A stretch of DNA of 64,000 nt from the NCBI GenBank assembly GCA_964035545.1, contig OZ037767.1:29714628-29778627 (forward strand), read 5' to 3'. Below the pieces are notes generated by a model. The model did not search any database. It worked only from the letters and a program-made list of their open reading frames with translations, and had not been told where the DNA came from. This DNA comes from Bugula neritina. Lineage: Eukaryota > Animalia > Bryozoa. Below are positions 4,765 through 54,567 of this stretch, piece after piece. Position 1 is the first letter of the stretch. Each line of letters begins with the position of its first letter. The translations under genes were made by a program, and so were the position numbers.

Positions 4765-6764
4765 ACCAACGCTGTGCGCGGTGACACCAAACTCCATATT
4801 ACGAGATAAATCGCCACTCCAAACTCTATTTCCTGATGAATTTGTAGATTTTTCACCAGTTTTAGTTGAACTGGACTTCCTTCAGAATACAAAATAATTT
4901 AAATACCACACAAAACATTTACAATCACTATTCAAGAGCAGGCAAACCCTGAGCTACTCACTTAGACCCTCCCAGGTCAGCGACATCCCTTGGGGCCGGC
5001 TCTAGTATATGGTGAGATAGTCTAAACTTGTCACACAGGTGCAGCAAGTCATATAGCTTCTCTATTTGTTCATTGAACCTGCAGATGATCATATAAGATA
5101 TGCATGCTAGGGTTCTGCTAAGAGGATAGAAACTACAATTCACCAAATAAATGAAGAGAGTTTGGTTAACATATGACAAACTTTCAGTGGTGATTGGAAC
5201 AGATTTTCACAGCAAAAAACTTGTAACACAGGATCTTGTATAATTATGCATTGTGACTTCAACAACTGATTGAAAGCAATTACTATATTTGAACTGTTTA
5301 AATTTCAAAAAGCTAAAACAAAATGAGTGAAGGCAAATAAAATTATGTTTAAAATAGAATAGAATAAAAAAATAGAGTTATTAGGTAATTGGAATGGTAT
5401 AAAAAATTTTAGGTGTAAATTGATGTACCAGAACTCAAGTACTCAGTATTAGAATGAGTAGGAGTGGTAGTAGGAAAGGTAGTAGTAGTAGGAGTGGTAG
5501 GAGTGGTGGTAGGGGTGATGATAGTAGTGGTATTGGTAGTAGCAGCAGCAGCAGCAGCAGTAGTAGTAGCAGTAATAGTAGTAGTTGGTACTAGTAGTCG
5601 GTATCAGCACAGTGTAGTATCAAACCACAGAGCAAGTGCATAGCTACTCATTACAGGGTAATAGCCTCTTGTAGAACTCCACACAATACCTAAGCTAACC
5701 TCACATTATTATACACATGTTTTCATTTTAAAGATGTTTACTGTATATCTAGACTCTAGAGGTAGGTGATTAATGTGTACTGTATATCTAGACTCTAGAG
5801 GTAGGTGATTAATGTGTACTGTATATTTAGACTCTAGAAGTAGGTGATTAATGTGTACTAACTTTGCTACCAAGGCACGAGCATTCTGAACAGTGTCACT
5901 AGACTGTTGCTCTTCCATTTCGCTGCTACACATCATGCATTTAAATGTTCCAGTATTCATATCAAATAGGTGATCCGCTTCTAGGTCGGTATATGTTTTC
6001 TGACAATGCAGACACTAGAAATAAAGATAAACTAGAAATTCATAAAAAGCAAAAGTATTTTCTTGAATTAAGTATATGAATAATTTATTATTAGTGATTG
6101 AATTTAATAAGAATCCATAACCTACAACCATGCTCTGTTTAATTAAATTAATTTTGCACTACAAGGAAACATTATCACCGCCAAAGAACTTGACAGTCAA
6201 TCAGTTCCTTTAATGAGATGGTTTGAGTGTTGCTCAATACTGTCACTTTGCTAAAAAGTCAACATTAGTGAATAGCAGATTGTACCAAAAACAAGTATGT
6301 CACATAAAAATCAGTCAGCAGACACAAATATTATTAGACTAAATCATTTACTGTAAAAATTATTTAAAATAACAAACTTTAAATGAAGCTCTACTTGTTG
6401 AGTCTCGCTCCTGCATTTCTAATTTTCTTCTTATATGATCAAGTTTATATTTCACCACATTCACAAATCCTGTGTAGTGAATAAAATAATAATTGTGCTT
6501 AGTAATCTTTTTCTCATCATCCCCATACTCCATTTTCATTCGTGTCTTGATAAACTGGTCATTTTTAAGTCTCTTTATTGATATACCCATCTGCTTTTTA
6601 TCAAGCTTCAAAAAATCGCTCAAATCTTCTTCTTTCATGCATTTATGTTTTAAAAGCATGTCTATAATGAGCATTTCTTCAATAGTGTAGAATGCTCTCA
6701 TTACGTATTTTAGCAGTTTTTTTAAAGGCTCTGGCACCTCAGTCACAATTTCAGTTGAATCCAT
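1927..6764 (-). CDS. GTF2E1: General transcription factor IIE subunit 1 (TFIIE-alpha), 7 coding exons
   Basis: Exons 6764-6378, 6014-5863, 5078-4962, 4879-4767, 4436-4315, 3864-3672, 2093-1927 join in frame with GT-AG junctions. Winged-helix N-terminus (FVNVVKYKLDHIRRKLE..ERD..SRASFK), zinc ribbon CLHC..YTDLEA..CMMC, KREQPTWLTKSTV, LLVHE, acidic C-terminus ending LVEEMTDEQRDEY..DMYE*. Confidence 0.96.
2207..3640. repeat. ~1.4 kb minisatellite, unit ~15-17 bp (CTCTCTACTCTATATA), in the last GTF2E1 intron
   Basis: Tandem array read directly; units vary in TA/CT dinucleotide number. Confidence 0.97.
4490..4762. repeat. Degenerate ~21-bp tandem (ACTGTATATATACCTACCTAC) ending in (TA)n
   Basis: Repeated ctacactgtat..acctac units; pure TA run at about 4718-4761. 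Confidence 0.8.
5455..5600. repeat. (GTA/GCA/GTG)n trinucleotide low-complexity tract
   Basis: Read directly; intronic in GTF2E1. Confidence 0.85.
5738..5859. repeat. 39-bp tandem repeat x3 next to the GTF2E1 exon 2 donor
   Basis: Unit TACTGTATATCTAGACTCTAGAGGTAGGTGATTAATGTG, three copies. Confidence 0.92.
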
Positions 6765-12900: not shown

Positions 12901-15900
12901 TGGTGTTTTTAGCCTGTGTACATGTCGTCTCGATCTGGTGTTGATATATTGAAGAGGAATTACGGCAAGCCGGTTGGTTTGAGCCTATCATTTGCTACAG
13001 ACGACTTCAGGCTATGCTTCCCTTCACTCTTCCAAAGACTACAGAGTCAGTTAAGAATCTGGTGTACAACAGTTAAACTCGTTACGAGTAATATTAATGC
13101 TTTCGTATCGCTGCCCCTATAACCCTATAAACAATATACTGTGGAATATAATATATATATTATATCATGTACAATATAGTGTATATATTATATATATAAT
13201 GCGTAGAACCATGGGGTAAAAAATAATGAGCAATACGAATGCAAGCGAATATTATATATAATATAGTATATTATAATATTTTGTATAATATGATATATAT
13301 ATTATATATACATCATATATAGGCCTAATGTAGTATATAATAACATAGTATATAATACTATCATGTATAATAATACAGTAGACTTACAATGTTGGTTTGC
13401 TTGCATATGTATTTCTCATTATTGTTTAGCCCATGGTTCTACGCTTAGAATATGATGTTATACTTTTACATTGTAATGTGTTCTTATTCACAGTTTGAGT
13501 TTCAAATAGATTTTTAATGTATAAAATCTGAATTAATTTTCTCAACGCTGCCAGCATGAGAGCACTGAAGAGGTCAGCACTGGTATGGTGTACAGCTTGC
13601 ATCTCTTTCTCATCGATACGTTGATACATATTCTGGTAACTTCACAGGGTGGCAAGTAGGCAGCGGGTTTGAGTTCAAAAAGTATGGTCTGAATTCACCG
13701 GTAACCAAGCCCGGTCGCAGCCCGTTTGCTATAAACGACGACATCTATGATTACCTCACGAAGGGAATGGTTAAAGCCGTGCCCGAAGTACTGGAGGTCT
13801 CTGAGAATAGTGTGACGTTAAGTGGGGGAGAGGAGCTGGAGGTAGACGGTCTTATCATGGCTACAGGGTAGTCCATCTTGTTCTGTCATTTTGAGAATAC
13901 AAAAATTTCCATTTTATTTAAAAACACTCGACTTGCCTTCATCTTCTGAAATCCGTATGCAGTGCTTAAGTGGCGTTGCTGTGTGATTGAGTTGATGTTT
14001 AAATTTTAGGACAATATATTTTTGCTTGCATATACACTGTATAGCAGGGTATTTTGCATATGACGTATAATGAAATGCAAATTCTTTATTTGATATGAAG
14101 TTTTTTTAAAAGTGTGATAAGGTAAGGGAGCTTATTTTACCATAAGTGCCATTACCTCCACCTTACTAGTGGTGACAGCATTCTGCTCAGTGACCAACTC
14201 ACCTTTCAGCTGACCTTTCAACTCACCTTTCAACTCCTTGGTTATTAGAATAATTTGTACTATTATGTTGTGTTGAGCTCCAGAAGCGAATCTTTTTCTA
14301 CGTTTCGTTACGTCTCAAGTAATAATTTCTCAAAACTCTGTACTTGCAGATACGACATATGCAATTCTTACTTGCAGATATGATATACACTTGCCGATGG
14401 TTCGTCCAGAAGTTATTAATGTTAATAATCTAAAACTGTACAAACACATCTGGCCCGTGAACTCTCAACGTGGTACGCTCGCTGTCATTGGACTGTTCAA
14501 AGTTGCGGGATCGGCACCCATGATTATGGAATTACAGGCTCGGTGTGCAGTTCAAGTATTCAAAGTGAGTCCCAGGTTTTCTTACTAAAAGTCTATGGAA
14601 ACATTTAGCTAATTACTAATTTATTGGAAAGCTGCTTAAAATTCTCATGTTGGTTAGCTAAGTTGATAGTTTGTATTGTAAACTCAGCAATATTCACTTT
14701 AATTATGGTTATTGATTGGTTTTGATGATGATTGTTACTAATAAAAGGTTTGCTTTTGTCTAAAATCACCATCTCTAAAGGTTTTTAAATGAAATATTAA
14801 ATTACATCAAGCTATGCCAACACTGTGAGAAACTCATGATGCCATAGCAACAGCTCTTACCAGATGCTCTTCCAACTAATGATGTCTATAGACTTTGGTC
14901 CACTAGCCCAGCACATCAGGTGTGGGCACCATGCCGACGCCCCTACACGCTAGGCCGTGACTATCTTCTATGTCTGCTACTGCTAACATCTAGTCTACAG
15001 CTCTTTCTATAATAGAGTTTCCTGTTTGAAGGGCGGCTTCAAGCTTCCGAGTTGTGATGTCATGGAGTCGACTACCAAGGCGTACAGACCTAATGCGGGA
15101 GATCATGTGATCGTGCAGTTTATTTCGTACACCAGGGATTTGGCCAAGTGTATTGGCTGTTTGCCAACATTTGGTAAGACATTCTAGCCACATCACATTA
15201 CTAAAACACACTAACAGTTTAATCTTGCAAATTGCAGTTTATCTTAAATTTTGAAAATATTTTATTTTAAAGTTTTCAGCGCTTCAAACACAGTTTTAGG
15301 GATGTTGTAGCTGTTACCCAGTCAAGCTATCAGAGAGCCTTGTTTACCATAAATATAGCATGTGGAAGAGTTGAACTATCCTAGTAATATGAAAATTACA
15401 TTGTAATGTCAACCTTTTAGAGCTGAGTAGTTTTTGTCATAGTCCTATTTTTATATATTATAAATAGTTTTGTATCTGCAATAGTGTTTATCTAACCTTA
15501 TGAGTTGTTGGAATTGAATTGTTTTTGAAATTTTTATAGTGATCAAATTATAGATTGTGCCTTGGTAGTGCCGGTTTTACTCATAGTATTGGCTTACCAG
15601 TTATTGCTGACGTTATTGCATTGTATATGTACAATATTTGTTTATTTGATAAAAATACCGTTGCAAAATTATAAATTTGTTTATTTGCATGAATAACCTT
15701 TTAGGAACATATTGGACACAACCTTTGAAATGGTTTAGAATATATTTTGGCTCGACTTTTCCCTACATATTCAGACTAGTAGGACCAGGATGTTGTCAAG
15801 AATCATGGGATAGACTCGTAACTGCTCGTTCCAGAATTCACGCGTCACCCGAGGAAATTCGAATTGCGGAGGCTCGGCGAAAGAAGCGTAATGATAACAT

Positions 15901-16057
15901 ATTTGTGGGGTTAATACTGACTGCTACAGCAGCCTTATATATAACACTCTGGGGGTTTGGCTTATACTTCGCCTGGAAATCACTCAAATTTGGTTGGAGT
16001 TGTCTTCACTCATTGCTCGACAGTTTAAAGACACTGTATGCAAGTTTTAGCAAGTAG
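9998..16057 (+). CDS. Flavin-containing monooxygenase (FMO family) with C-terminal membrane anchor, 9 coding exons
   Basis: Exons 9998-10103, 10544-10686, 11167-11292, 11594-11851, 12913-12972, 13596-13867, 14378-14564, 15032-15173, 15705-16057. Motifs: FAD-binding [32 protein letters not shown] fingerprint [16 protein letters not shown]-binding [29 protein letters not shown], and a hydrophobic C-terminal helix. Confidence 0.93.
12080..12340. repeat. Intronic minisatellite (CAGTAACAGTGATAGTAGC-type units)
   Basis: Read directly in FMO intron 4. Confidence 0.9.
12512..12730. repeat. 40-bp tandem repeat x~5
   Basis: Unit GATTTGTTGATATATTATAATATACACATATATAGTATAC. Confidence 0.92.
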
Positions 16058-17180: not shown

Positions 17181-20100
17181 TTATTCACATTTATTTGCCT
17201 TTGGGTCTTGGTTTTTGTGATTGTTGTTGTATTGTAAGACCTCTGCAGTTATTTTGTTAGGATCCAGCTCCGTGGGGTTTCTGTTCATCACCCTTCGAAC
17301 AATAGGCTCGGGAAACAGGTTCTTTAAATGGTAATAAATTCTATACCTGGGATCAGTCTCCAAGATCTCTCTGTCGTAGGATTTCTTCGGATGTTGCAGG
17401 GCCTGCTGTACCCTCCCTTCGACTACCAGCGTGGATTGCTGGCTAACGGTACCATTAACAGTCTCATCCAACGGCAACGGAGCTGCAGTCTGCGAATCGG
17501 ATGACAAAGTCACGTGTGTTGATAAATCTGACGCCAGCGACGTTACGTCATGACGCAACGGCGAGGCAAGGTGTGATGACACTGCCGATGATGACATAGA
17601 CTGTGAGTTGAAGATTGGCTGACGGCTGTAGTATTGCGGGTCGTCCAGTGGAACGCTCCGATAAGACTTGTCTCTGATTACGTGCTGACACGCTCTGGAA
17701 GCCAGTGGTGGATGAGAGATCCTGACAGGGGGGTGGTCGACAGCGAAGCTGGGAACAGCTCCGTTGTAGGCGGATATGTAGTAGTTGGTGGGTACAGGAG
17801 AGGGGGACGAATGGGAAGTGGCATGACTATTCATCAGATAAGGGAAAGTATTGGGAGAATGGTATTGGCTAACGGATTGGTTAACCATTGCAGTGGCTCT
17901 GAAATCATACAAATCCCTTATCAACTACTAATATAAACATTAAAGGAAAAGCAATAAAGAAATTGCAAAAATAAAATATCAAAGCCTTTGGAGAATTCCG
18001 ATTGTGGAGTAACGCGTTAAAAACAAGGATGAGGCAAGCTGCCAAAATATACAAGGCTAGTGGTAAAGCAATATTATGATTCTATGATGGCAGCTGACAA
18101 GCTATTCCAATATTTGTAGAAATGACCTACTTCCTGATGAACTAGTCAACTCAACACACAAAATTATTTAAAAATAGTTTTGTAGATCACGATCATTGTT
18201 AGATACCAACTGTTTAGCTGAAAGTGATCAAATGGACACAGCTTTAGCCAACTGTGACAGAGAGAAACTACAGGTAGAGCGGGGCTTACCTGTTACTCCA
18301 GATGTCCTGCCTGTGCCCAGCAGAAGTGCTGGCAGCGGAGGATGGTAAATTATCTGTAAAGCCGCTGTCGGCAAGCATAGCAGCAGATGAGGGGGATTGG
18401 GGGACTGTGTTACAGTCACCTGAAACAAAGTAACCCACAGTGAAGAGTTGATAGAACTAAGGCTATCTGGTCAGAAACACAGCTAAACATTGCACAGTAA
18501 AATACATTTTGGGAATTCATTAGAGTACAACATTCAGCGTTTTTCACAGTCTCAAAGTTTGTCAGTGTCGATTCTTAATTGAAACGAAACTGGGTTTAAA
18601 CACTCCAGGAAGAGAAAGAGTGGAGTGAATGGAAAGAGATGTAACATTGTTTGTCAAAGGTTTTCCGTGGAAGGAACACGTGCTAAAATGGCTTATTTCT
18701 TGATATTTAAGAATCAGCTTATTTGTGGCTCACTCAACCAACAAGTTGATATTCGACTATTAAACACTCAGCCATCTTAAACTGACATACAAGGAAATAA
18801 AAGCAGGGGTTTAGATCTAGGAGATATGTTGCATGTGTGAAGGTGATAAGGACCCTGGACAAGATACTTAATAATGTGAGGTAGAGGTATAAGCAGCCAT
18901 GCCAATAATAAATCTGTTTTTACTTTACTCATCAGTCCCTCATTGCCTCTGCACAAAACCTTTGCAATAAAGAATGAGGAAATTGGCAAGACTTTAGCGC
19001 CATCTGCCAGCTTGTAGAGATTAATTACAACTACCTCTGCAGAAAGTTTAACCCAAGATTTTAGACATAAAATCATCGAAACTATGAAAAGAGGATGAGG
19101 AATAAATTTATGTAAGCCTGGTTTTTTGCCCAAGAAATTTTTAGCAGGTAGAAATGTGATAGGAGGACACACTAGTTAGGTCGACTGTTGTACTGGGCCA
19201 CACTCTGCGTGCTGTTGAATTAGACTTAAGGAAGCACGGTGTTACAGTTGTACATGCTGTGAGATAACTATCAGATGATACGACATCCTGAAACTTGATG
19301 GGTGTTATCTGCTTGACTAAGAATTGTAGGAAAAAGCAACAGCCCTGGTGATGTATTGCATTCTAGTAGATACATACTAGTTTCCTAAGCTACACAACAA
19401 TCTAAATTGAATCTGGGTAGTGTAGAAAGTATTTAGAACATGGAAAGTTAAAGTAATGTAAAGAGTATAGAGCAGAGTATAGAATGTGTATAACATAGAG
19501 TGAGTGAGGAGGACGTACCAATAGCTGAGTCAAAGGTATCGGATCTCTCGGGATGCTCGTAGCGGCACTTGGTGCCGTACGTGCACTTCCTGCCGTACGG
19601 ACACATACCGGAGCTGACAACGTGGGGAGAGACTCGCAGAAACTGTTCCAAGGTCGGTCCTCTGCGACCAAGAGGATCCTCTGCAGGTATAAACCTACAA
19701 GAAGTAAATTTACATGTACAAAATATCGGTTGAAAAAGCAGCTACAATTCAGAAGAACTTTTGGTAAGAACTTGAGTTAAATCTACAAAAAATAAACTCA
19801 AGTAAAAACATAGATGAACAAAACACACGTGTAGATAAAACAACAGGCTACAACGCTTTTTCTTACGCCAGTATAATAAAGGCGATAGATGAAACAATGT
19901 GGTGACATAATATTTGCTATGAAGGTGTGGTGCTGGGTTAGTAACACCATTACATCATCAAGCACCGTGATAGTCATCTTGCACAGCCAGTAGAATGTTG
20001 GACAGCCAGTAGAATGTTGGACATAATCAGCCCACACAAAAAGATGACATCACCAGATTCCGTAACTCAACACCCAAAACATTGAGTTCTGAGCTCAGAA

Positions 20101-23100
20101 GGAGGGTGGGTGTATCGGGAAGAAGGAGGGGGTGTAACAGAATAGTGCATACTGGCCGTAAGCTATAGGTAAAGGTAAAGTTCCTTACTGATCGCCAGCA
20201 AACACGAAGGGTAGAATTCGCTTCTCTATGGTTTCCCTGAATGCAGAACTTTCATTTTTAAGGTCTCGGAAATGATCGTTTGAGACGACGATGGCTTCTC
20301 CCACAGACGCCAGCTTCAAGACAAATCGATCTTCGTAGCTCGCTATATTTCCTTTATTGCTCTTCCTACTGGGGGTTTTCACCAGTACCCCCCTCCTTGA
20401 CAGATCTCGCAGTATTTGCTGATCTAATATATAATGCAAAAACAATTATAACAAAACTCTTTTTAGGGAAATACTTTTACACCCCACGGAACTAATTGCT
20501 TAGCAACTAGAGGAAAAGTTACTCTATAGATTAGATAACTAATGCATTCAATATTACAAAAATGTTGTAAAATTATCATAAAATACCTTTCGTTTGATAT
20601 TTTTCATTCGTTAATTTATGAGCTGGAACAAACACAGTTATATGCTCATGCCCACGGTTTTGGAAGTATTTCACAGCAAGTTCGATTCCCCTGTACGAGT
20701 ATACCTGATGGAGCCCGTGCCTACAAGATAATAAGTAGCAGTGTGTAACCCAGTGTCTACCAAGTAACTGAGGTATTTCATGAAATGCTAACAATAATAA
20801 CTGACTATATAAGATTACACACTGAATCAGCCACATGACCATAACAAGGAAAAAGAAGTTAGTGCTGAAACACTTAAAACAATAATTACAAGATACTGGG
20901 AGGAAATAGGAGTGAATCATTAGAAATACAAAAAATGTGGCTTGATAAATGGTATAAAACGACACAAGATTAGAATCATTTCACTGAGCACACACTATTA
21001 TTCACAGTTTTACTAATATATTGAGGAAAAAAGGATGTTAGACTGGAATTTTTCCTGGAGATGGAAAATAAAAAAGCAACACATTTCATTGGTTCTTGTG
21101 TTCAAACATGCAAGCCATTAGAGCGTAAAAAGGGTAATAAATAAAATAACAATCCTATTCACTCACTCACTCACTCACTCACTCACTCACTCACTCACTC
21201 ACTCACTCACTCACTCACTCACTCACTCACTCACTCACTCACTCACTCACTCACTCACTCACTCACTCACTCACTCACTCACTCACTCACTCACTCACTC
21301 ACTCACTCACTCACTCACTCACTCACTCACTCACTCACTCACTCACTCACTCACTCACTCACTCACTCACTCACTCACTCACTCACTCACTCACTCACTC
21401 ACTCACTCACTCACTCACTCACTCACTCACTCACTCACTGCGAGGGTGTATGAAGATATGCACTTACTCCATGGCCACGTTACTGCCATCTATTACCATC
21501 CTGCGCAGACCTTTGGAATCTCCTATGCATTGACTTTTCTTAGAGCTGGAGTTTGGACCACTTTTTGATCTGACATTGGGTGATTTCTTGTCTGCAGCGC
21601 CCTTCGCAGAGTCTCTAAGTTTGACTAAATGACGCAGCAGTTTGTCCTTATCCACGCCAGCCTCCCCCAAATCAGCGTAGCATTGTTCAAACTCGGCATC
21701 CGTGTAGTCCATTTTCTGAGCAAAGTCTCGCAGCATTTCTCGGGACAAGCTTTGATTTGATGAGGTAGTAGTTGTGTGGGAGGCATTTGATGCAGACAGG
21801 TTGTCATTCACAAAACCACTGTCTCCACTAAACGATGAGCCTATGGATGAAAAGTCGGCAGATTGTAGGCTGGAGTAGCCGGGATCTTTAGCTATAAGAT
21901 GTGAGAGGAGAGGTTTGGGTGGGATAGAGTATGGTGGGCATGGTTCAGCGTCTGGTACAGAGTCTAGCATGTGGTCTGTCATAGGAATGGTGTCTACGTC
22001 CTTTCTACCCCCTAGTAGACTTACATATCCCGAGTCCAGAGATCTGACGTCTGACTTGCTCTTCTCAACATCTCCCGTCCTACGAATAAAAGCAAACATG
22101 ACTCGCTACAAACATCCACGGCTGAAGCTAGAGCTAGCTAGCATATAAGAGTACTACAGTACCTCTAGATTGCAAGCAAGCAGCATATTTTGACATCGAT
22201 GAAGAATTGCAGAATGACAAGCTATGGCCAACCATCACTCAGTATGACATGTTAGGAAAACTCTATCCATCAACTGATAGATATGCTATTGCCTAGGTCC
22301 ATGTTGACCTAGAGTCATTGAGAAACTACGACGCATACCCTTGGGGCTATAATTTCAGGTCTCGGCTTGTCCCAAAAGCTAAAGAGCCAAAGCTATATGC
22401 TAAACTTAAAAAACTATACTCAATTTTATTACTTCAGAAAAACAGACTTGTAACCAACAAACTTGGAACTTGATTTATGAGCTCAACTTGAGACCAACTT
22501 AAGACGGTGGGGACTTGAAAAGAAATGGGACATGGAACGCTATAGCTTGTTTACAATAACAGTGGCACATATCGCCTGCAGCTGTTGTCAGCTGTTCACT
22601 CAGCCAGGCCTTCTATGGTGCTATGCATAGATTTTCTTACAGTTATGAGGAAGTTTTGCACAATGGAGACTTGCTGTAATGTAGCAGTTGATTCTGTTTA
22701 GTAAATGCAGCGCAAAAGGCTTTCAATGGTACTAGCAACTACGGCATAATTATAATATAGCATTGTACTGGAGTGTATTAGTTGGTATTATAGTATTATA
22801 TATATTAGTAATATGGCATTATGTATATTAGTATTATAGTATTATGTATATTAGTAATATGGCATTATGTATATTAGTATTATAGTATTATGTATATTAG
22901 TAATATGGCATTATGTATATTAGTATTATGGTATCATGTATATTAGTATTATGGTATTATCTATAGTAGTATTATGTATATTGGTATTATGGTATTATGT
23001 ATATTAGTATTATGGCATCATGTATATTAGTAATATGGTATCATGTATATTATAATTTTAGTAATATGTATATTATAATTTTAGTATTATGGTATTATGG

Positions 23101-30344: not shown

Positions 30345-30735
30345 TATAATATTACTAATACTAATACTGAGTAATATTAATAGCAATATTATTACTATTA
30401 CTATTAGTAATACTAATACTAAGTCTAATATTACTAGTAATAATACTTATACTAATATACTTATAGTAATAATATTACAAATACATGCATTACAATTATT
30501 ACTATTAGTATTACTATTAGTATTACATTTACTAATACTTATACTTATACTTATAGTTATACTAATACTAATACAGTAATAGTAATAATTATAATACATG
30601 TATTTGTAATATTATTACTATTATTAGTATAACTGTTACTGTTAGTATAAGTATTATTATTACTATTAGTAATATTACTATTAGACTTAGTATTACTATT
30701 GGTATTAGTATTAAAATTATAAATTATTAGCAATA
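30345..30735. repeat. (TAC/TAT/AAT)n low-complexity tract
   Basis: Read directly. Confidence 0.85.
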
Positions 30736-31510
30736 TTGATAATGATTAAAGAGACTGTTCGTGTTCCTGGTACGCTCATACTTAAAGTTTAAGTTAACAG
30801 ATTGATAATCATAATCATAATCACTTAATGATGACATAAACATTAACTCTAAGTATAACTATAAGTAATGGCGATTCCTGATTACAATATGAATATTATT
30901 CTATTTTATATATACTTAAAAATGAAGTTTATTAATTTTTAACGTCAATAAAAAATTAAAAGCTAAGCATGGTCATAATCTTAATCATAATGCTTTTAGA
31001 TTTTCTTTGAGTGTGAGTTGAAACTTCTCTGTCATCATCTTTGCAATGAGTAAAAAATTTTGGTTAAAAGGTTAATGTATACCACCATAACTTATTTTAT
31101 ACTATTAAGTGAAATTTAGATTACCTGTGGCGTACCTTTTAGAACACAATTAATAGTTGTCTTCTATTACTATCAATAGTAATAGGAGACAACTTATTGA
31201 TAAAAAAATGTGTTAGAGCATTCCTATTAAAAACCGAGAGGATAACTCGACAGTTTTTTTTTATAGCAGCGTGGTGATGGCCTAATTAGTTCAAATTTTT
31301 GAACAATTATTAAGTCATTTTTAATATACACGTAATATAACATAAAAATTCCTCGCAGTTACTATTAAATCAATGTTTTCTTTAAAGAGTATAGCTTTGG
31401 TAAATTGTAACATGTGCTACATATGCATCTTCTTTATTATAACATATATACTAATATCATGTTTTCTATATGCACAAGTTAATCATATATAAGATGTGCA
31501 AGCGATCACT

Positions 31511-31513
<3 letters not shown>

Positions 31514-31584
<71 letters not shown>
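31514..31584. repeat. (TA)n microsatellite
   Basis: Pure TA run. Confidence 0.97.
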
Positions 31585-31588
<4 letters not shown>

Positions 31589-33261
31589 TTTATAAAATAA
31601 AACTAATTCACTAAAACAAATTACAGACTCACCCGAGACCATTAAAATGAAACTAGGCTTGATAATATAAAAGCTATCTTGTAGGAGTATAGATATTTGA
31701 TTGAATTATGTAATTTTTGCGTCATGATAACAATATCATAATACTGCCACCATGTGCTTAATAGAAGTTGGCAACATGTCAACAGTGTTATAAAAATAAG
31801 CCAGTTTAATAAATACTCTACAATCTACATTCTTCCATGAATCAACTTTTCCTTGCAATTGGATTATCCACCACCAGGTACGAGACAACTCCAAACATCG
31901 TCTCAAACACCCCTATATTTTAGCAAATAAATCACTAATTGGAGCACCTTATGTATGTGGTTACAATGTCTTGTAATTTACTTAAGATATTTAAGTTTTA
32001 ATGCATTGTTACTAACACTAGGAAAAGCTAAGCCCCATTATTGCTTTAGTTTTGTCAAGTGTTTTTATTTAGACAGCAAGATTATTATTTAACAAATTAA
32101 TTTCATGCCAAAGCTAGCAAATATATAAAAGATTCGAGTTTCTGTATTTAGTGCATTTAGGCCCAAAACAATCAGTCTGTCAGCATATTTTAAATTATAA
32201 GTTATATAATTGAATTAAAGATGTCAACAAGTGAACCTTTGTTGTCAACACACCTGTTAGTACTCAAATAGCTGACCTGACTGTATTATATACTTCCTAT
32301 ATTTTATAAATACAACTTATTTTTACATCGGTCATCTTGAAATGCTATACGGTGGATGTATGGCTGTCATTATGCTATCACTTAATCATCACTAGTTGGC
32401 AAATCAAAGACAGCTAAAAATAGACTAGATTTATTGTTTTTACTTATGAATCAAAAGGACAAAAAATAGATTTCAAAGACAAGTAGTGTAATGCTAATGT
32501 TAAACACTCACAGGTGAAAGTGCTATAGTATGCTGTTATGCTATATTACGTATGTTGCATATTGCCTCTGTATTAACAAGTTGCCTCCTATAGCCTATAG
32601 CATTCACTTTATTCAAAAGTCAACAAACATGAAAAATGATCAACTAACAATTGTACAAATCGATTTAAAAACATATTGCCATACTAATACTACAAAATTT
32701 ATGGTAGTCATATTAGTTTATTGTGGGTATATAATTTAATATTTGGTTCTAAAGTTTGTAAGCAGTGATACTGTTAAACTCTTTGGTCTCCTAAGGACAT
32801 GATTTATATGCGATAAACGATACAAAATTGAGAGATCTATATAAAACATGCAGTCAAAACATTTGTACATCTGTGGCTAAAGTTGAGCCTGCGTTTTAAA
32901 TCTAATTGAAAATTTTAAAAAATCTACAGAAAAATAACTTATATTCTCTAAAGAATAAATAGAATCTTATGAAATAATAAAAATAAATAGGCAAATAAAT
33001 TATAGCACAAAGATTCATTATTGATTGTTGTAAAAAGTTGCCTTATAAATAATAATTCATGTAATACTTGGTTCATAATTATAAATAAATACTATTTTTA
33101 CTAAAATCAACTAAAATCTACTAAATCAACCATAGCTCTTACACATGCATAATATTCATATAAAAAAATGAAGATGAAATAACTTAATACTCTTTGGCCG
33201 CCTTAGCTAAATAGGAATCTACATTATATTATTATGTCTTGAGATTGTCTAAAATATATTA

Positions 33262-35295
33262 TCATGCCTGTATGTTGTATGCATACACCATACATTCTAA
33301 GAGATTTTCCAGCTCGGACAACTTTTCCACATTGTACCCTTCTGAAGTAGACTGGGAATTCCCACACCCACAATTCTACAATGCAATACAGACATTACTA
33401 GTACAACCGAATGCTTGCTAATATATAGAAATTAACTCTCTTGCTAAAATATATGAATTGAAAACAAATATTATACAATTCAAGTGCTATTCAGTTTTAA
33501 ATTATAATTTGCTAGAAAATGCATGTATATGTAACTTTTTGTTGCTGAATCTTTGACTTGATGTTGATACGCAGAAAAGCCAGTTAACAATTTTAATGAG
33601 ATTTTCGTAACATCTTTGTTTAGTTATGCTGAAATATACTATAAACATTCAAGCTGTTTTAAAAATAGTAAAAACATCATATAAACTTGATTGTGTTTAG
33701 TTTTGAAATCTAATTACACCTACATGTAGTGAAGACCAAGAGGTAGGAGAGACTTCTGCAGTTATCTCCCCAATATAATCTAGTCGATTTCTAATATTTT
33801 GAACTAGCCTGCTGTGGTTACCCACCACACGACAGAGGGTATTAGTAGGATGCATTAGGACGGCATAGGCTGAATAAAATATACTCACAGCTTCATCTCC
33901 ATTTCCATACTGTAACACAGTTTACCATGCAGTTAAACACAAAATAAAGTTTTATATTTATTGAATAGTGATAAGATTTTGTAGGTATGCATTGGCTTGT
34001 TTAGAATTTGAACTAAGAATCAAATAATTTCATAAAATTTGCTTTTTAAAACAGCAATATTTATAATTACTTGCAACATAAAGATGAAAGAAGAAGCTTT
34101 ACGTCTCCATGGTAACAGTGACGTAATACTTACTATTGTAGAGTGCAAGCTATTGCAACACTTTTGCTGACGGCTAAAAGCTGACCCCAATTGTGTTAAC
34201 TGCAAAATTTAACATAAAATTACACATACAGCATATATGTATATAGTATAAGTGAGCGTGTATGTTTGTGTTTTTGTGTGTATGCGTGAGTGTGTAGGCT
34301 GTATAATACAAGCACCACGTAGCTAGGGTATAAAACCACTTTCAATCCGAATTTTTAAAAATATAATTTTACTTATATTGCTCACACATTATAGATTCCT
34401 TACATAGTTTCCCATAAGTGTATTTAAGTCATTCTTTAAATGACCAATTCCTGTGGTAAATTCAGACTTTTTTATTCCTGTGATATCTTCTTTAAATCCC
34501 TGAGTTAGACGTTGAATGCTGCAATATATAACCTTTTCAATATGAACTACCATTTGCCGTGAAACGTTCAATTTTGTGATATACTATACATTTTAAAGGA
34601 GAATAATATAAACCATATGTTTCAACAAACATTGGCAGGATTATAGACACCTTGATATTTTTTAATTCAATGATAAACTTAAATTGCAGCAGCATAATAT
34701 AAGTGACAACATTTAAACATAAAGTAAGTTTTTACTTTTTGTGTGAAATGAACAAATGGTCACACAATAAAGTACTTTTAAAAAAATATGTGATAGCTTT
34801 AAAAAATTATTGTATCCAAAAAGTATAATTATAGTGCTACTATCTTTTATTTAAACGGCAAGAATAGCAATAACTATACCTGCATGCTGTTCTTTTATTA
34901 CGGAAAATCGTTGATCCATCAACTGTATTACAGCACAAACTTCCAAAGAAAATAAGCAGAATGTATTTAAATGTCCAGCAAAGTTTACCAATGCACAAAG
35001 AAGCTACAAATACAAGAAAAAACTATTAAATAAAGGTATATGGTTACAAAGAAAAATCCAGTTTTTTTCCAATGAAACTACAATTATACGGTTTAACTTG
35101 ATCAGAATGAAAAACAGTAACTAAATATATATTAGCTGCCTTTAAAAGTTTAAATTTTTCTTTTGAACAGAAAATGCAAAAGATCAGTACATTATAAATT
35201 TAATGTTTATTAATAGTATTATCTGTTATGGTGTAATTATACAGATTTTTAAAGTAAAAATATCTCTCACCTCTTAATGATTTTTTAATAGTCAT
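33262..35295 (-). CDS. Secreted 209-aa protein, candidate long-chain four-helix cytokine (IL-6/CNTF/LIF-like), 6 coding exons
   Basis: Exons 35295-35271, 35003-34880, 34518-34404, 34199-34134, 33909-33724, 33375-33262 total 630 nt, all GT-AG, intron phases 1,2,0,0,0. Product: MTIKKSLRASLCIGKLCWTFKYILLIFFGSLCCNTVDGSTIFRNKRTACSIQRLTQGFKEDITGIKKSEFTTGIGHLKNDLNTLMGNYLTQLGSAFSRQQKCCNSLHSTIYGNGDEAVSIFYSAYAVLMHPTNTLCRVVGNHSRLVQNIRNRLDYIGEITAEVSPTSWSSLHNCGCGNSQSTSEGYNVEKLSELENLLECMVYAYNIQA*. The gene model is better supported than the family assignment. Confidence 0.7.
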
Positions 35296-38200
35296 TGTTA
35301 AATTTTGAGTTTGCATATATATGTTGATGAAAATATAAATAAATAAATAGTTTTTAAATAATTAAAAAATTAAAAGGCGCTCTAAATTAAGTTGCATAAG
35401 AGAGAAATGGAAGTACTTACTATAACATGTCCATCAACTCAAAGCTTATATAGGCAAATGCATTCTGCTCAAATTCTAGTTCTTACAATTAAGAATGATT
35501 CAGGCCAATTTTTAATCATTAAAATTCACTTGTTTTAACTACCATATACAAAACACATAATTAAACAATCATGCTTAAAAACAGTGTTGTGAGGTAATGT
35601 TGCACTACTTATCAACAGGTTTGTTACTCCTAATGTAATCATTACACATGTAAGTGTCTAGTTATTCATAATAAAGCTTGTAGGTGAAATATTATTGTTG
35701 AGCACGTAAACAGAGTTAATGCCTTTTGAAACTTTGCCAGAAATTTAGCCGAGTTTCCTCAATATTCTTTGATGGCCAGAGAATTTTAACAGATTAATTT
35801 ACATAAAAAGACAGAGAGACTTTAGGATATATGTCCATGTTACTCCTATTTTGTCTTCGTGTTAGTAAATTAGCATTTAGGATGAAGTGTGGCCCTTTAA
35901 AAATAAAATCAATAATATTGAACAGTAGGATATATTTTTAACAGACTTTGTGATTCCGTATTAATTTTATAGACTGCAAATACTTTGTAATAAATTTTTG
36001 CGCATATCCTAAAAATCTGTTATTTACAAAATTTATAAAACTTGCCAATATCAACCTTTAATCTGTACTATCAGGAGGAAATATGAAATATTAAAGCTAC
36101 TGCATGGTTTTATAACTTCCTTTGAACAATATTCAAATATTCGTTATATCTCTTGCATGAGTAAAGCACAAGCCATATGCAATTACTGGTACGTTAGTTA
36201 TAAGCTTTTAGACAAATTAATGCATTGTTTGAACACTAAATCCTTCAAATTAACAGTTTATTAGAATTTCTTACAAATAAATATTATAATAACATAATGG
36301 CAGTGAAATATTTGAATAATGGTACAGAAAGGCATTTTCTGATCAGAAAGTGTTTTTACTTTTGTTGTTTAAAAATAAACAAAACTGGAATTTCCAAAAG
36401 AGAAACTTTAAATAAGAAACATTTTAATATGCACACATATTAGGGTTTGGCAAAAATTATTGGATTAAGTTTTCTGGTTATTGGAGTCGAGCCAATTTTT
36501 AAGACCAGGTAGTTAGTTTTACTTAAAAGTTTTTTGTTTTAATATAATATTACAGGTAGTTAAAAGTTACCTGTTAGCTGTTGCCTGTGATACTTTATGA
36601 GTTACAGTTTTGATTGCTATAAGGAAAATATTCTATAGCATGCTTGTTATATGAAAGAAATATTATTCTGGCAAATAACATTCTTTTTGAAAAGTCTTGC
36701 AGCTAAAATTTGCCCAGCTGTTATAGACTTGGCTACCAACAAATATTTTCACTATGTATATGCTTTAATCTTTTTTATTATAAAAATATCAAAATATCTT
36801 TTTCAGCTGTAATTGAAAAAATTGATAAATTGATAAAAATTGGTACATTTTTTTATTTATTACACAAATTCTCCAGGTATAGGAATTGCTATAGCAGAAA
36901 CTGCTGTTTGTTGTTATTATTTTATACCTGGTAGTGATAAATATTTTTAAACAATTGGAAATACTAACAAAATTGTCATGGCATTAAACAAAAAACTGAC
37001 ATTTTTTTGCAACTGACAATAATTATTAACCTCATGCCCTAAAGTGAAGGAAAACGTAAAGTGAAAGAAAACATAATGTTTTATAATTCAGGTAAAAAAA
37101 ATTCATAACAATTTTTCGGGCCCACGTGTAAAACTACTGAGTACATTACTCACTAAAATAATCTTAGTAATTTAATACAATATGAACTAAAGTACAAAGT
37201 GAAATAAATTTGTGAAATACAAACATCTTTTGTTTAGTTACGTTGAATAACAGATGTTAAATCATTCAACAAAATAAATGCTTCCTCTGCAGTTGCTATT
37301 TTTATCTGAGAGGTAATTAATTATAATTAGTTTCAGCAGGGCAGCAAGGAGGTGTTTTCAATCCACTCATAGCCTTTAAATCTACAACCAACACCTAACA
37401 CCAAAAGGGTCGCTTCAGCACCACCCGGCGGCCGTAGATGCTGCGCCAAAGGCTAAATGTACTTGGGATTTTACTTTCAGATTATTTTAGCGAAACATGC
37501 TGATTTTGGTGTAATTATAACACTTACATGTTTGTGCACAACTCAAACAGGGTTTAACAGCCGCTAAAGCTTTTAGCTTCTAAATTGATAGTTTGCTGTC
37601 TGCAACCAAAATTAACAGACAGTTGTTAGTGAAACTAAGTAACAAAAATTCTAGGAAAAAGTTGGTGTTGTATTTTCATTACCTATAGCTTTTGTAAAAG
37701 TTTGATAAATTTCAATAATTCTAATACACTAATAAATTGGTACAAAGTTTTTTTATCTTTAAATTTAAAGTGTAAATACCAGGGAGTTAAGTCTAATGAG
37801 CATTAGCAATAAGTTTCTCAGTTTCAAGAATATAACAAAGGAAGCTGCTACTGTTAATATTCTACTAGGAATAAGACAAATTGTGGAGTTTTGGCTTTCA
37901 TCCAAATATTCCTGAATAAAGACATAACAACTTCTGGAATTTTGTGAAACTGGCCACTTCAAGTTAATTAAAGTTATGAATAATGGGCACTACTACAGCT
38001 AGTGGAATGAACTTCAGGAATGAGGTCAAACCTATTTCATGACATAACGAAGTCTTACAAACTACAAACATGAACTTTTGACTTTGAATGACCAACTTAT
38101 GAGTACCTTTTTATTACACACTGCATCCAATTATGTAATTACTTACCTCACCTCTCGTCTCGCTCAGCCATGCGTTAGTTATTTTTATTAATCACTTTTT

Positions 38201-49028: not shown

Positions 49029-52000
49029 CTAAACAGTACAGTCTCTAGAAGTATAATGTACAGCATGTTCTCCATATCCATCTGTTAGACTCACATCATC
49101 TAGATCTGTGACATCATACAACTCACAGCTTCCTGTTTGTATATCATAGTTTACTGACTGACAGAGACTACTGGATGTACAGATACGAATACACTGTGCT
49201 GCTGACTTTACAGTGTGAGTAGATACTGTGTGAGCATCTATTCTAGAACCTTCCACTTTACAGAACATCATTTGCTGACTGTCTCCTCTGTAGCTCTTTG
49301 GGAAAGCTACGAACTCTTTATCTGAAATAAATGCAAGCATACAGAAAATTTAGCAAGTACCTGCAAGCACCTGCAAGCACCTGCAAACACTTGGAATATT
49401 ATTCAAATAAAAATCACTGCAACTATAATGGATCAGATATACAATCCAAGGCTTGGAAGGAACCTTTGTTTGCTGGATGGCAGCACTTGAATAAATGCTG
49501 AACAGGAAGCTTAGTACTTCACTCACTCAATATAACTGACTGGTTTTAAAGCACTTCTGTTCCGTGTATAGACTCTTGGATTAAGCTGCATAGTTGAATT
49601 TGTTTGATTTTATTTATTGCAAATCATAGATTTTCCATTGCAACCCTAGATTTATTATATTATGGTATTTAAAGCAAATCATAAACATTTTACAATGTAG
49701 TTGACCTTTTGTGTGAACTTTCTGACAGTTACAGAAGAAGGCCGCATTTAATTCTTTAATAACCTTGTGACAGCACAGCTCACCGTTGCAAGGGAAGTTT
49801 TCATGAATTATGTCAGCTTGACCCATAAACTTCAGAGTATCCAGGTTTATAACATTCCCTCTGTCATTACACCCCAACTCTTTTAATTCTGTCTCCGATA
49901 CTACGTAGTCCCACATGTTGAATAACGCAACTTTTCCTGGTATAACCTGGGTTGTGTCTAAATTGCCTTCAAGAAAGCAGCAAATAGAAACAAAAATAAA
50001 CACTGTACGACCTTAACTTATACAGGTAACCATAGATACATAAAAACCATAAACTAATAAACTGAAACTTCACTCACCTCCAAAACTATCTTGTTCATGC
50101 AGTAATATAATAATTCCACCTTTCTTTATACCAGCTGATGCATCTGAGGCAGCAGATTGCATGAGTTCGAGTTTTCCGCTGGTTTCTACATCAGCATACC
50201 ACTACAACCATATAGCGTCAGCATGAGGTAGAGTCTTTATGTTTGGACAATTAGTAATTCATTTGTACAACTTCAAAGTTTAACCTATATGTGATATCTT
50301 TATTATATTAGAATATTTTTGTTGAAAATACGAGTTATGCGTGTGTGCATTATAATTGAAGCAAGTTATTGCTTAAGATGTTTAAAGAATAATACTTTGA
50401 ATATTCTTTGAAATGGTCTACCAAATTGTACAACTTCTATATCTTGTCTATATAATGCAGCACTGAAATGTATTTTAAATTTCATCTGGAAAAAATTATA
50501 AAACTGTCGCTCTAAGACATAAATAATAAACATTGTCATTATAAATTTTAGTAGTTATCTTCTCTAACAAAAACGAATTTGATTATGCAATGTGATGAGT
50601 TGGGTATTGCAAACAACACACTAAGAAGCAAAGTTTAGACCCTGCAAGTATAGAGAAAAGCCAAATCAAATGAGAGGTAGGTATTGAACTGTTATATGAT
50701 AGAACTCACGGTAAAGTTTCCATCTCCCTGCCATGTTATGCAGTGTTTATGCCAACCAAACATTGTAGCTATTGGTGTGTTGGATAACTTAAGACGATAT
50801 GATCTTTTATATGCATCTTTGATATCTCCTTGATTTTCATAATATATTCCAAACTCATCAGATACACCTTAAAAGACAGTAAACAGTACATCCTGCAAGA
50901 TATGCTGTCTTAATAATATTCTGCTAATTAAATTATATTAGCTGCCACAATATACAACTTGATCACTCAACTGGTTTCTAAATTTAAAATTTGAACTTTC
51001 AAGCCAGCTAATTAGTGATTAACAATAGCATGCAATTAAAGTCAGCAATAAGTTGTATTAGTTTTATAATGCCTTTTATTAGCTGCCTGGAAACTTCATC
51101 AGCTGCAAGCAATCAGAAATCTTATATGTAAATTTAGGACATGTTTGCTCAAGATTTATTATAAAACAAAGTTGTTTGACTATTCAACCCTTAAAAAGTC
51201 TGTTGTAGATGATAGTTAAAATATATATAGACATTTAATAGAGGCTTTTCACAAGCCCTCTGGGGACATTTGTATTTTGAAGTTGTCTCCTCCCAGAAGG
51301 GCGAAGTGTAGTCTCCATGATATATAGAACAAGCACATAAAATCAGTAGAAATCTAAGGTTTGTGGGAAGACTATTGCTAGTACCAGTTTCATTTTTTCT
51401 GAGATTAATATTTTGGCATAAGCACACAGGTTAGCAGTTCCAGAAAAATTTTAAAAATTTTCTTTCTTCAAAAATCTTGAGAAAAATTAACTTCAAAGCA
51501 TGTTTGTGGTTTTGGTTACTGCACGAGCAAGCTGAATTGGCAACTATGAGATAAGTCCCATTAATCAGTTGTTATGCTGGCTGTCATATTCAGTTTATAG
51601 CTGTTGACCTTTCAACTCTTTGGTCAGAATGTGCTGTTGACACAGTGTTAGACCACTGCTACTCTGCTAGTGCACTGAATGAGACAGCAGATTAGCTGTG
51701 TTAGCATTTTCATTACACTTACACACTTATGCTATGAGAATAGCTAGACTATAACCTCAACATCCATCATTTTCACAAAAAGCATTTTCACAAAGCTATA
51801 GATATATATTAAATAGACAGATTAAATTTGTAGTATAGAACGAATATGAAATGTGCTTTGACACATGTCGGTTAATTATCTAATACAGGTTAAATGCATC
51901 TATTGCAATTGTAACAATTGTGCTCAAATAAATATATATCTAGATAATTTAATCAAAAACCGAGATAGTCTTTTAGCAGTTGGCATTCAGGCCCTTGTGT

Positions 52001-54567
52001 TACAGCTTTGTTATTTCTTAATTATGCCTGTGGCTTGTAGCATTTAGGAGCATGCAGTAGTGAAGAAATTGAGATAGCCTAAGTTTTTTAACTTTCTTTA
52101 CAAATGTTGGTGTTGCGTATAACACAACTTTTTTGCTACATTTCTAATCTAGAAAAAAGGCTTTTCCCAATTTCTCCATTAGTACTGCATCTACCTTGTG
52201 TGTAGTAGTCATCTCCGTCAACTGCGGTAGATTCAAGATCCTAGTTAATGTATGGTAGGTTAAAATATAGTTATATAATAAGATGGATATACAATATAAA
52301 ATAGGTAAACTAAGCTAATCACTACTGCACCTGAAAGCCCAAGTTTCCCAACTCATCAAATTGCAGCATAAACTGAATTCTCTGAAAATTACTTTAGAAG
52401 GAAATTCTGGTTGAAAAGTAGCCTATTAAGCAGATTCTTACAAGTGAAGCAGTGAAAGCATGTTGATAAAATTGGGTTATTAACATTTTGCTTGGATTTT
52501 CAGTTAAACTGTTTAATGTTATAGCTCCTCAACTTCTCATGCTTCAAATATCATGAGCTAGTGTTATTGACACTCAACTGCAGTTATACAACTAGCTTGG
52601 CTGATCCCATGGGTCACAAAATGTTATAAAATATAAAGCCTTTCTTAAATTTGAGACTCATATTTGAATGACATAAAAGTTTAGAGGTTGGCTATAAGTC
52701 ACGACAGCACCAATTAGAATATTACAGCTATTATCTTAAAATAGGCATGCGCGAGGATATGTAAGTTAAAATCAAGTATAACATTTCAATTAAATCTTTT
52801 AAATAAAACTATTAGACCTGTTGTAAAATATGCAATGAAGATATAGGGCAGACAAAATATTTCAAGATGGATCGATATTGAATGAAAAGATGCCTGCTTA
52901 AATATAAAGTGTTTTTAATAAATTTTTGCATAAACTGAGCTTTGCTTTTCTTGGTAATATTTTTCTTTTAAAGAAGTTTTAGCCATAACATGAAACTTAT
53001 ATGTAAAGCATTCCTGGTCCCTTGAACATAATGTAGCACAAACTCTTCAAAGTGTAATTAAGTGCACATGCTATCACGCATCATTTTGATACTACAAATT
53101 TAATCTGTCTATTTAATATATATCTATAGCTTTGTGAAAATGCTTTCTGTGAAAATGATGGATGTTGAGGTTATAGTCTAGCTATTATCATAGCATAAGT
53201 GCGTAAGTGTAATGAAAATGCTAACACAGCTAATCTGCTGTCTCATTCAGTGCACTAGCAGAGTAGCAGTGGTCTAACACTGTGTTAACAGCACATTCTG
53301 ACCAAAGAGTTGAAAGGTCAACAGCTATAAATTGAATATGACAGCCAGCATAACAACTGATTAATGGGACTTATCTCATAGTTGCCAATTCAGCTTGCTA
53401 GTGCAGTAACCAAAACCACAAACATGCTTTGAAGTTAATTTTTCTCAAGATTTTTGAAGAAAGAAATTTTTTAAAATTTTTCTGGAACTGCTAACCTGTG
53501 TGCTTATGCCAAAATATTAATCTCAGAAAAAATGAAACTTGTACTAGCAATAGTCTTCCCACAAACCTTAAATTTCTACTGATTTTATGTGCTTGTTCTA
53601 TATATCATGGAGACTACACTTCGCCCTTCTGGGAGGAAACAACTTCAAAATACAAATGTCCCCAGAGGGCTTGTGAAAAGCCTCTATTACTGCAAAAAAT
53701 AAAGTGTGCCAAGGATTTTTTATTTAAATAGTTTTCCTGGATAACAGTCTATTTTAAAGAGCTGTCAGATTCACAGTTTATATAGAAACACAGTTTTTCT
53801 AACAGCTTTAAATTTTTGGTTCGTAATGATATATAAAAATAAAAACAATAAGCTGCTCAAGTGTTAAATAATATTCTTGTATTTTATCTTAATGAATCCA
53901 AAACAATAAGTTGTTTTGATAATATTTCGAAGGTTAAAGATGAAAACAAACTTACATTAAATATGTATTACCTGGGACAGAAATAGAAAACAGGTATCTG
54001 CCATTTTTAGTTGAGAGAAAACCTTTAGAGAGCCAGAAACAGCAGGTAAAGTTTGAGAGTGCAGGTAAGTTTTCCTGGTATACATACTCAGTAGTAGTTC
54101 TGTGTTGTGTATATACTGAGAGTTGCTTACTCTTGCCACCTTTAGAAAATAAATGTTAAAGTGTGCTGCTTAGCAGAATGTTGAGAGTTTTGTACTAATT
54201 TAGAAGCGGTGAACACTGGGTATCATATGAAGAAGTTTACCAGTCATATTTGAATATATTACAAATATAATTAAATATGCTGAAAGCATATTACAGATAT
54301 ATTACAAAGATACTATATATCAGGGATAGTTCAACTAAACTAATTTTTTTAAAACACTTTGTAAAGTATAAAATTTTAAAAGAAAAGTTTGTCAAAAACT
54401 GCTATTGAAAGATTATTGCAATACAAATAATTAAAATGTTTACATATGAAATAATGTTTGGAACCCTACAGTTAACATAAATTATTATATTATATACAGC
54501 ATAAAAGCTTACCTGAAATAAAGCCAAAATTTGAGTAGAAAATAATGAAAGTGTGCAGAATGAGCAT
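49029..54567 (-). CDS. Pentraxin-like + PAN/Apple protein, copy C (intron 2 enlarged by a foldback element)
   Basis: Exons near 54567-54513, 54140-53972, 50867-50710, 50201-50078, 49967-49784, 49321-49029. MLILHTFIIFYSNFGFIS, FTCCFW, VSDEFG, WHKHCITW, LLHEQD, FNMWD, PAN; frames are open. Confidence 0.86.
51240..53685. mobile_element. Foldback-type non-autonomous element with ~600-bp near-perfect inverted arms
   Basis: 51240-51836 is the reverse complement of 53089-53685 with few mismatches (mirror ORFs 51191-51427 and 53498-53731). Ends AT|AGAGGCTTTTCAC ... GTGAAAAGCCTCT|AT; spacer ~1.25 kb. Confidence 0.88.

Follow-up and report, generated by a model that had tools for sequence, protein, structure and literature searches.

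A candidate gene for a secreted long-chain helical cytokine in the bryozoan Bugula neritina

The locus and its gene model

The stretch of DNA that was analysed (64,000 nucleotides, hereafter the window) comes from B. neritina, a cheilostome bryozoan belonging to Lophotrochozoa. The gene of interest occupies 33262-35295 on the minus strand and has no paralogue within the 64-kb window. Just upstream of it is a tandem array of PAN/Apple domains (39930-61004, minus strand), made up of at least five exons, nearly identical and interspersed with pentraxin-like ones; the array is a recent expansion of PAN-pentraxin genes. It contains a pair of inverted repeats (51236-51836 and 53089-53689; 600 nt, 98% identical), possibly a recent transposon. 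Approximately 11 kb downstream of the candidate is a ZC3H12/Regnase-like gene (17181-22099, minus strand), with NYN nuclease and Regnase C-terminal domains and a weak UBA-like match. Mammalian Regnase-1 degrades IL-6 mRNA; the proximity of the two genes may be due to chance. A flavin monooxygenase-like gene has its last exon at 15677-16057 (plus strand; weak Pfam match), and an exon for the TFIIE alpha subunit lies at 6360-6764 (minus strand). Downstream of the candidate lie a degenerate AT-rich tract with a 6-nt period (30350-30720) and a long (TA)n microsatellite (31510-31585).

A preliminary description of this DNA proposed a six-exon gene with GT-AG introns and a stop-free open reading frame of 209 amino acids. 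This structure was borne out when coordinates and phases were recomputed, and the ten splice dinucleotides are kept in a close relative. Joined from their coordinates, the six exons on the minus strand and five GT-AG introns give 630 nt, that is, 209 codons and a TGA stop. The introns are 267, 361, 204, 224 and 348 nt long, in phases 1, 2, 0, 0 and 0. Measured against every GT in the window, the donors score within the best 0.4-8%, and against every AG the acceptors fall within the best 1-26%. The coding part of exon 1 (35271-35295) is only 25 nt, eight codons and one nucleotide, and ends at a strong phase-1 donor. Exon 2 (34880-35003; 124 nt) carries the predicted signal peptide, a short pro-piece, the sequence RNKR and Cys49, and has a phase-2 donor; this extra phase-2 intron, named as a caveat in the preliminary description, is indeed part of the model. 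The remaining donors are all in phase 0. Exon 3 (34404-34518; 115 nt) supplies a short N-terminal helix and helix A up to Tyr88, and exon 4 (34134-34199; 66 nt) a putative 22-residue AB loop with Gly93, Phe96, Cys102 and Cys103. Exon 5 (33724-33909; 186 nt) encodes helix B, a turn, helix C and a short helix at residues 165-169. Exon 6 (33262-33375; 114 nt) contributes a putative CD loop rich in Ser, Thr, Gly and Asn (with Cys174 and Cys176), a putative helix D with Cys200, and the TGA. An in-frame ATG at 35316, 21 nt upstream of the assigned start, is conserved in the relative; seven extra residues are possible, and the protein may be 216 rather than 209 amino acids long if this ATG is used. 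Splicing of the six-exon model is predicted. Neither spliced reads nor a spliced contig turned up for the five introns, and the contig from one presumed RNA run belongs to the relative and is unspliced over exons 5-6. Such a contig could be DNA or pre-mRNA, and is thus uninformative on splicing.

A TATA box (35445-35452, minus strand) is identical in the relative, within a 95% conserved stretch, and an initiator-like site follows approximately 31 nt downstream, near 35421; if transcription starts there, the implied 5′ UTR is approximately 125 nt. A conserved consensus splice donor (35415-35420, minus strand) sits right at this presumed start, without a suitable acceptor before the ATG, and perhaps marks an alternative first exon. 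The putative 3′ UTR (32717-33261, minus strand) ends at the first conserved AATAAA (32722) and includes a cluster of AU-rich elements, of the kind that short-lived cytokine messages carry in their 3′ UTRs. There are five overlapping AU-rich heptamers against 0.95 expected (P 0.0025). The plain AU-rich pentamer is not significantly enriched (P 0.11) and AU-rich enrichment is also found in the upstream stretch, so that the cluster is weak evidence. No conserved STAT, NF-kB, AP-1 or IRF site was found upstream of the gene. There is a perfect palindromic NF-kB-type decamer at 33354-33363, inside coding exon 6 and kept in the relative, which may be a chance occurrence within codons.

Conservation and searches for homologues

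The relative is represented chiefly by contig L001, which is syntenic with 25.6-40.7 kb of the window at about 79-85% identity, with an overall similarity of about 83-85%; it comes from a close relative and not from the same genotype as the window. It retains the start, the stop and every splice dinucleotide of the candidate gene. There are no indels in the 630 coding nucleotides, against 25 indel events across the five introns, and 23 of the 42 coding substitutions fall at third codon positions. In the coding frame, pS is 0.160 and pN 0.041, giving dN/dS of 0.23 (Fisher P 7e-6). Two further contigs (L002 and L004) have exons 3-6 free of gaps, with splice sites identical to those of the window. 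From the retention of splice sites, the contrast in indels and the dN/dS value it follows that the six-exon locus is a real protein-coding gene under purifying selection; a chance open reading frame is rejected by the selection on the frame. The last 22 residues show no amino-acid change in the relative, and no part of the protein has changed less than helix D. Close to the locus, L001 carries two called genes, of 134 and 190 amino acids, which contain stops in the standard code and are artefacts. Two non-coding stretches, one in the 3′ part of intron 5 (33400-33500) and the other downstream of the polyadenylation signals (32200-32400), are 93-97% identical in the relative, above most intron DNA, and are possible regulatory elements.

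Exon by exon, which is how the database searches and fold predictions were run, no kin of the protein turned up outside this relative; frame, selection and composition were examined on the joined frame. Among 1.84 billion cluster representatives, in a search that could show full-length proteins, exon 5 gave one match, a gene call on the relative's unspliced DNA. The searches with other exons, exon 2 among them, could not show full-length proteins; exon 2 gave nothing, and for exons 3 and 5 the matches were all prokaryote-style gene calls on unspliced DNA of the relative. With exons 2, 3 and 5 searched singly, there was thus no full-length entry and no homologue beyond the close relative. Pfam, including its Unpaired profile, gave no match exon by exon (single exons of 22-62 residues), single exons gave chance matches alone against the PDB by sequence (E 0.5 or worse), the ESM Atlas gave nothing usable for exons 5 and 6, and scans of metagenomes gave no match to the candidate. 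It should be noted that the best motif of the protein straddles the junction of exons 3 and 4, and searches of profiles and structures with single exons are therefore of low power. A limited literature search turned up no report of a class I cytokine ligand in bryozoans, molluscs or annelids.

The predicted protein and its cytokine-like features

The hydrophobic segment, the RNKR site, the junction at Tyr88 and the helical segment of the last exon, all named in the preliminary description, were located in the places given for them. The hydrophobic core of the predicted signal peptide (residues 22-33; 34965-34930) is preceded by a long basic n-region of 21 residues, and the pattern of small residues suggests that signal cleavage is likely to occur after Gly38. 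RNKR (residues 43-46; 34902-34891) is unchanged in the relative whereas three neighbouring residues differ. Its retention while the flanks change makes furin-type trimming likely, which would yield a mature product of 163 residues and 18 kDa. There are seven cysteines in the mature protein (Cys49, 102, 103, 136, 174, 176 and 200), one of which is necessarily unpaired; the disulfides would most plausibly join Cys102 or Cys103 of the AB loop to Cys200 of helix D, and Cys49 to Cys174 or Cys176. In LIF, OSM and growth hormone, a cysteine of the AB loop likewise pairs with one in helix D. A sequon for N-glycosylation is present at Asn141, in the four-residue turn between helices B and C.

AlphaFold models of isolated exons give some indication of the helices. 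For exon 3 the model shows a short helix (52-63) followed by a confidently predicted one (67-86), which reaches the end of the exon at Tyr88; the regular 3-4 hydrophobic repeat of helix A continues to Phe96. Exon 5 (mean pLDDT 77) forms a helix at 114-139, the four-residue turn, a second helix at 144-163 and the short helix at 165-169, with helix C having a weak helical moment. By composition, residues 97-113 and 164-187 are polar and poor in helix. Residues 188-207, the putative helix D, have a helical pattern, with a hydrophobic moment that is not significant (P 0.36). With A, B and C taken from exons modelled singly and D from its sequence pattern, the helices are 20-26 residues long and the linkers approximately 25, 4 and 24. 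Isolated-exon models tend towards helix, and they set the boundaries of the helices rather than prove a fold. An up-up-down-down bundle requires long AB and CD loops (PMC7378365), and the long-short-long linkers fit that requirement. Single exons used as queries for fold searches recovered hairpins of a generic kind, with 863 chains at Z of at least 5 and a best Z of 7.5, and these tell neither for nor against the cytokine fold. Of the earlier reading of the protein as a helical cytokine, part is supported, namely secretion, a mostly helical character, a helix A running to the intron at Tyr88, and the exon 5 hairpin with long linkers on either side; the single-exon searches did not reach a cytokine. 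The evidence supports a secreted and mostly helical protein of cytokine size, and the fold is probably that of a long-chain class I helical cytokine of the IL-6/G-CSF type.

The arrangement of exons provides a further line of comparison. In IL-6 genes, from hagfish to human, a single intron interrupts the signal region and three interrupt the domain (bioRxiv 10.64898/2026.04.02.716188). The candidate has this layout, with a phase-1 intron after codon 8 and three phase-0 introns in the domain, in addition to the extra phase-2 intron; following the tiny phase-1 exon, its phase-0 introns separate helix A, the AB loop, helices B and C, and the CD loop with helix D. The structural places of such introns are common to IL-6, IL-11, G-CSF and growth hormone. 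Resemblance to IL-6, IL-11 and G-CSF extends to the length of approximately 200 residues, the predicted signal peptide, and an exon that carries both B and C, joined by a short turn. The features used in the screen for lamprey IL-6 were a length of 150-280 residues and a signal peptide (bioRxiv 10.64898/2026.04.02.716188); the candidate, at 209 residues and with its predicted N-terminal signal peptide, is inside that range. IL-6 also has a short helix early in the CD loop (PMC7378365), to which residues 165-169 would correspond. In contrast to IL-6, IL-11 and G-CSF, the candidate has the extra phase-2 intron, a furin pro-piece, seven mature cysteines and a shorter AB loop, and it lacks both a detectable sequence match to them and a Trp at the site-III position at the start of helix D. 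Neither an extra phase-2 intron nor a furin pro-piece is typical of the class I cytokine family.

The preliminary description placed the protein with CNTF and LIF, on the strength of a pattern D-L-x-x-L-x-x-x-Y followed, across a phase-0 intron, by x-x-x-x-G. Tyr88, Gly93 and the phase-0 intron are present as described, although the D-L-x-x-L-x-x-x-Y part derives from CNTF alone. At the junction of helix A and the AB loop we read Tyr88-x4-Gly93-x2-Phe96, with the phase-0 intron at Tyr88, a combination that fits LIF-like cytokines. The Tyr and the intron position are shared by LIF-like cytokines, among which CLCF1 may fit the junction best. Phe96, which was not part of the earlier pattern, matches the conserved Phe52 of LIF and CT-1, where Pro51-Phe52 is kept at the same junction (PMC9601804), and OSM has a receptor-contacting glycine, Gly64, in its AB loop (PMC11557873). 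The rough chance of such a four-residue pattern is near 1e-5 per junction, a figure for a motif picked after the fact and so open to the risk of pattern-seeking. The AB loop also has a cysteine 9-10 residues after the Gly, as in cytokines that bind LIFR. Cys49, in the N-terminal extension, stands 125-127 residues before Cys174 and Cys176, recalling the pairs C31-C152 of OSM and C34-C156 of LIF; unlike the situation in the LIF/OSM group, Cys174 and Cys176 are approximately 11 residues beyond the predicted end of helix C and not inside it.

Two features set the candidate apart from the CNTF/LIF group. In the CNTF, LIF and OSM genes the domain is interrupted once, after helix A, as in the pattern of LIF, OSM, CT-1, CNTF and CLCF1 generally; the candidate has three introns there. 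The site-III motif FxxK at the start of helix D, which defines the cytokines that bind LIFR, has its F conserved at 98% and its K at 96% in LIF, OSM, m17 and CT-1 (PMC9601804). In the candidate there is no FxxK, nor any aromatic-x-x-Lys/Arg after residue 46, the nearest approach being Tyr186-x3-Lys190, and no clear site-III aromatic is in register. The candidate departs from the group on both counts, and its assignment to the CNTF/LIF subfamily, as originally worded, is not supported. It may nevertheless work like a cytokine of the IL-6 family. Amongst invertebrate proteins, the Drosophila Unpaired proteins (Upd1-3) are similar in being secreted and in having been proposed as class I cytokines that act on a gp130-like receptor, Domeless. 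The candidate differs from them in phylum and in having no Pfam match exon by exon, and Upd precursors are much longer.

Competing explanations and biological meaning

On balance, the features described above make it probable that this is a single-copy Bugula gene for a secreted long-chain class I helical cytokine, which may act via a Domeless/gp130-type receptor and JAK-STAT. According to this scheme, the precursor would enter the secretory path by means of its signal peptide and lose a short pro-piece at RNKR, and the remaining 163 residues or so (18 kDa) would fold as an up-up-down-down four-helix bundle braced by disulfides. Outside the cell, the product would serve as a short-lived and inducible signal, able to cluster a receptor of the Domeless/gp130 type and to turn on JAK-STAT. 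For this last step, signalling through such a receptor and JAK-STAT, we consider the case evenly balanced. The main competitor is a secreted helical protein peculiar to this lineage and of a different fold, or else a four-helix protein that engages no cytokine receptor, perhaps one matured by furin and serving in matrix, adhesion, settlement or defence. We consider this unlikely, but well worth keeping in mind. It would account readily for the failure to find, among billions of proteins, any homologue beyond the close relative, and it sits well with the lack of FxxK, the furin pro-piece and the weak amphipathy of helix D; helical hairpins are, moreover, very common, as the 863 chains noted above indicate. 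The exon layout and the junction motif would then be coincidence, and against this stands the joint occurrence of long-short-long loops, three phase-0 introns at the expected places, a tiny phase-1 exon and the motif.

Other kinds of ligand are much less probable. A class II helical cytokine of the interferon/IL-10 type, acting on a class II receptor, would be similar in size, helicity and phase-0 introns, and could explain the extra short helix in exon 3 (52-63); a tiny phase-1 first exon is found in IFNL2/3 (PMC2654155), and the introns of lamprey Ifn2/3, three in number like those of the candidate domain, are in phases 0-0-0. Five helices and four phase-0 introns are classical for class II genes; the candidate has three phase-0 introns. 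Between C and D, where a further helix is found in interferons, the candidate has a polar, helix-poor loop (164-187) before the last helix. A structure screen saw no invertebrate interferon fold beyond lancelets, but would have missed a gene lacking annotation. Taken together, we regard a class II cytokine as improbable. The same low probability attaches to a four-helix ligand like SCF, M-CSF and Flt3L, or like growth hormone, whose receptor would be a tyrosine kinase or else CRLF3, a class I orphan receptor that is present across animals (PMC8063046). The helices, at 20-26 residues, are of long-chain size, there is no transmembrane tail, and Cys136 is in helix B rather than C; on the other side, the cysteine spacings 49-136 and 102/103-200 may be near those of SCF and M-CSF. 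Least probable of all is a precursor, of neuropeptide or prohormone type, that is processed into small peptides. The signal peptide and a conserved KR site would be expected of such a precursor, yet there is one conserved dibasic site alone (the relative has NK in place of the KK at 66-67), there are no repeated peptides, and conservation is even over long helices.

If the reading as a class I cytokine is correct, the gene could be homologous, in Lophotrochozoa, to the IL-6/LIF superfamily of vertebrates and have kept ancestral intron positions and a LIF-like motif at the A/AB junction; we hold this stronger proposition to be possible, at somewhat under an even chance. Receptors of the gp130/Domeless type date to the protostome-deuterostome split (PMC1963337), and their ligands diverge too fast for detection by sequence. 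Lamprey IL-6 was found in 2026 by a structure-guided screen (bioRxiv 10.64898/2026.04.02.716188). Genes such as the present one escape protein catalogues, and structure screens on annotated proteomes would therefore miss them. An intact candidate that is under selection and has a vertebrate exon layout brings the activators of JAK-STAT in lophotrochozoans within reach of direct tests. Were the homology to hold, it would provide the first molecular handle on ligands of Domeless/gp130 outside chordates and flies, and the gene architecture of long-chain cytokines would already have been in place in the bilaterian ancestor.
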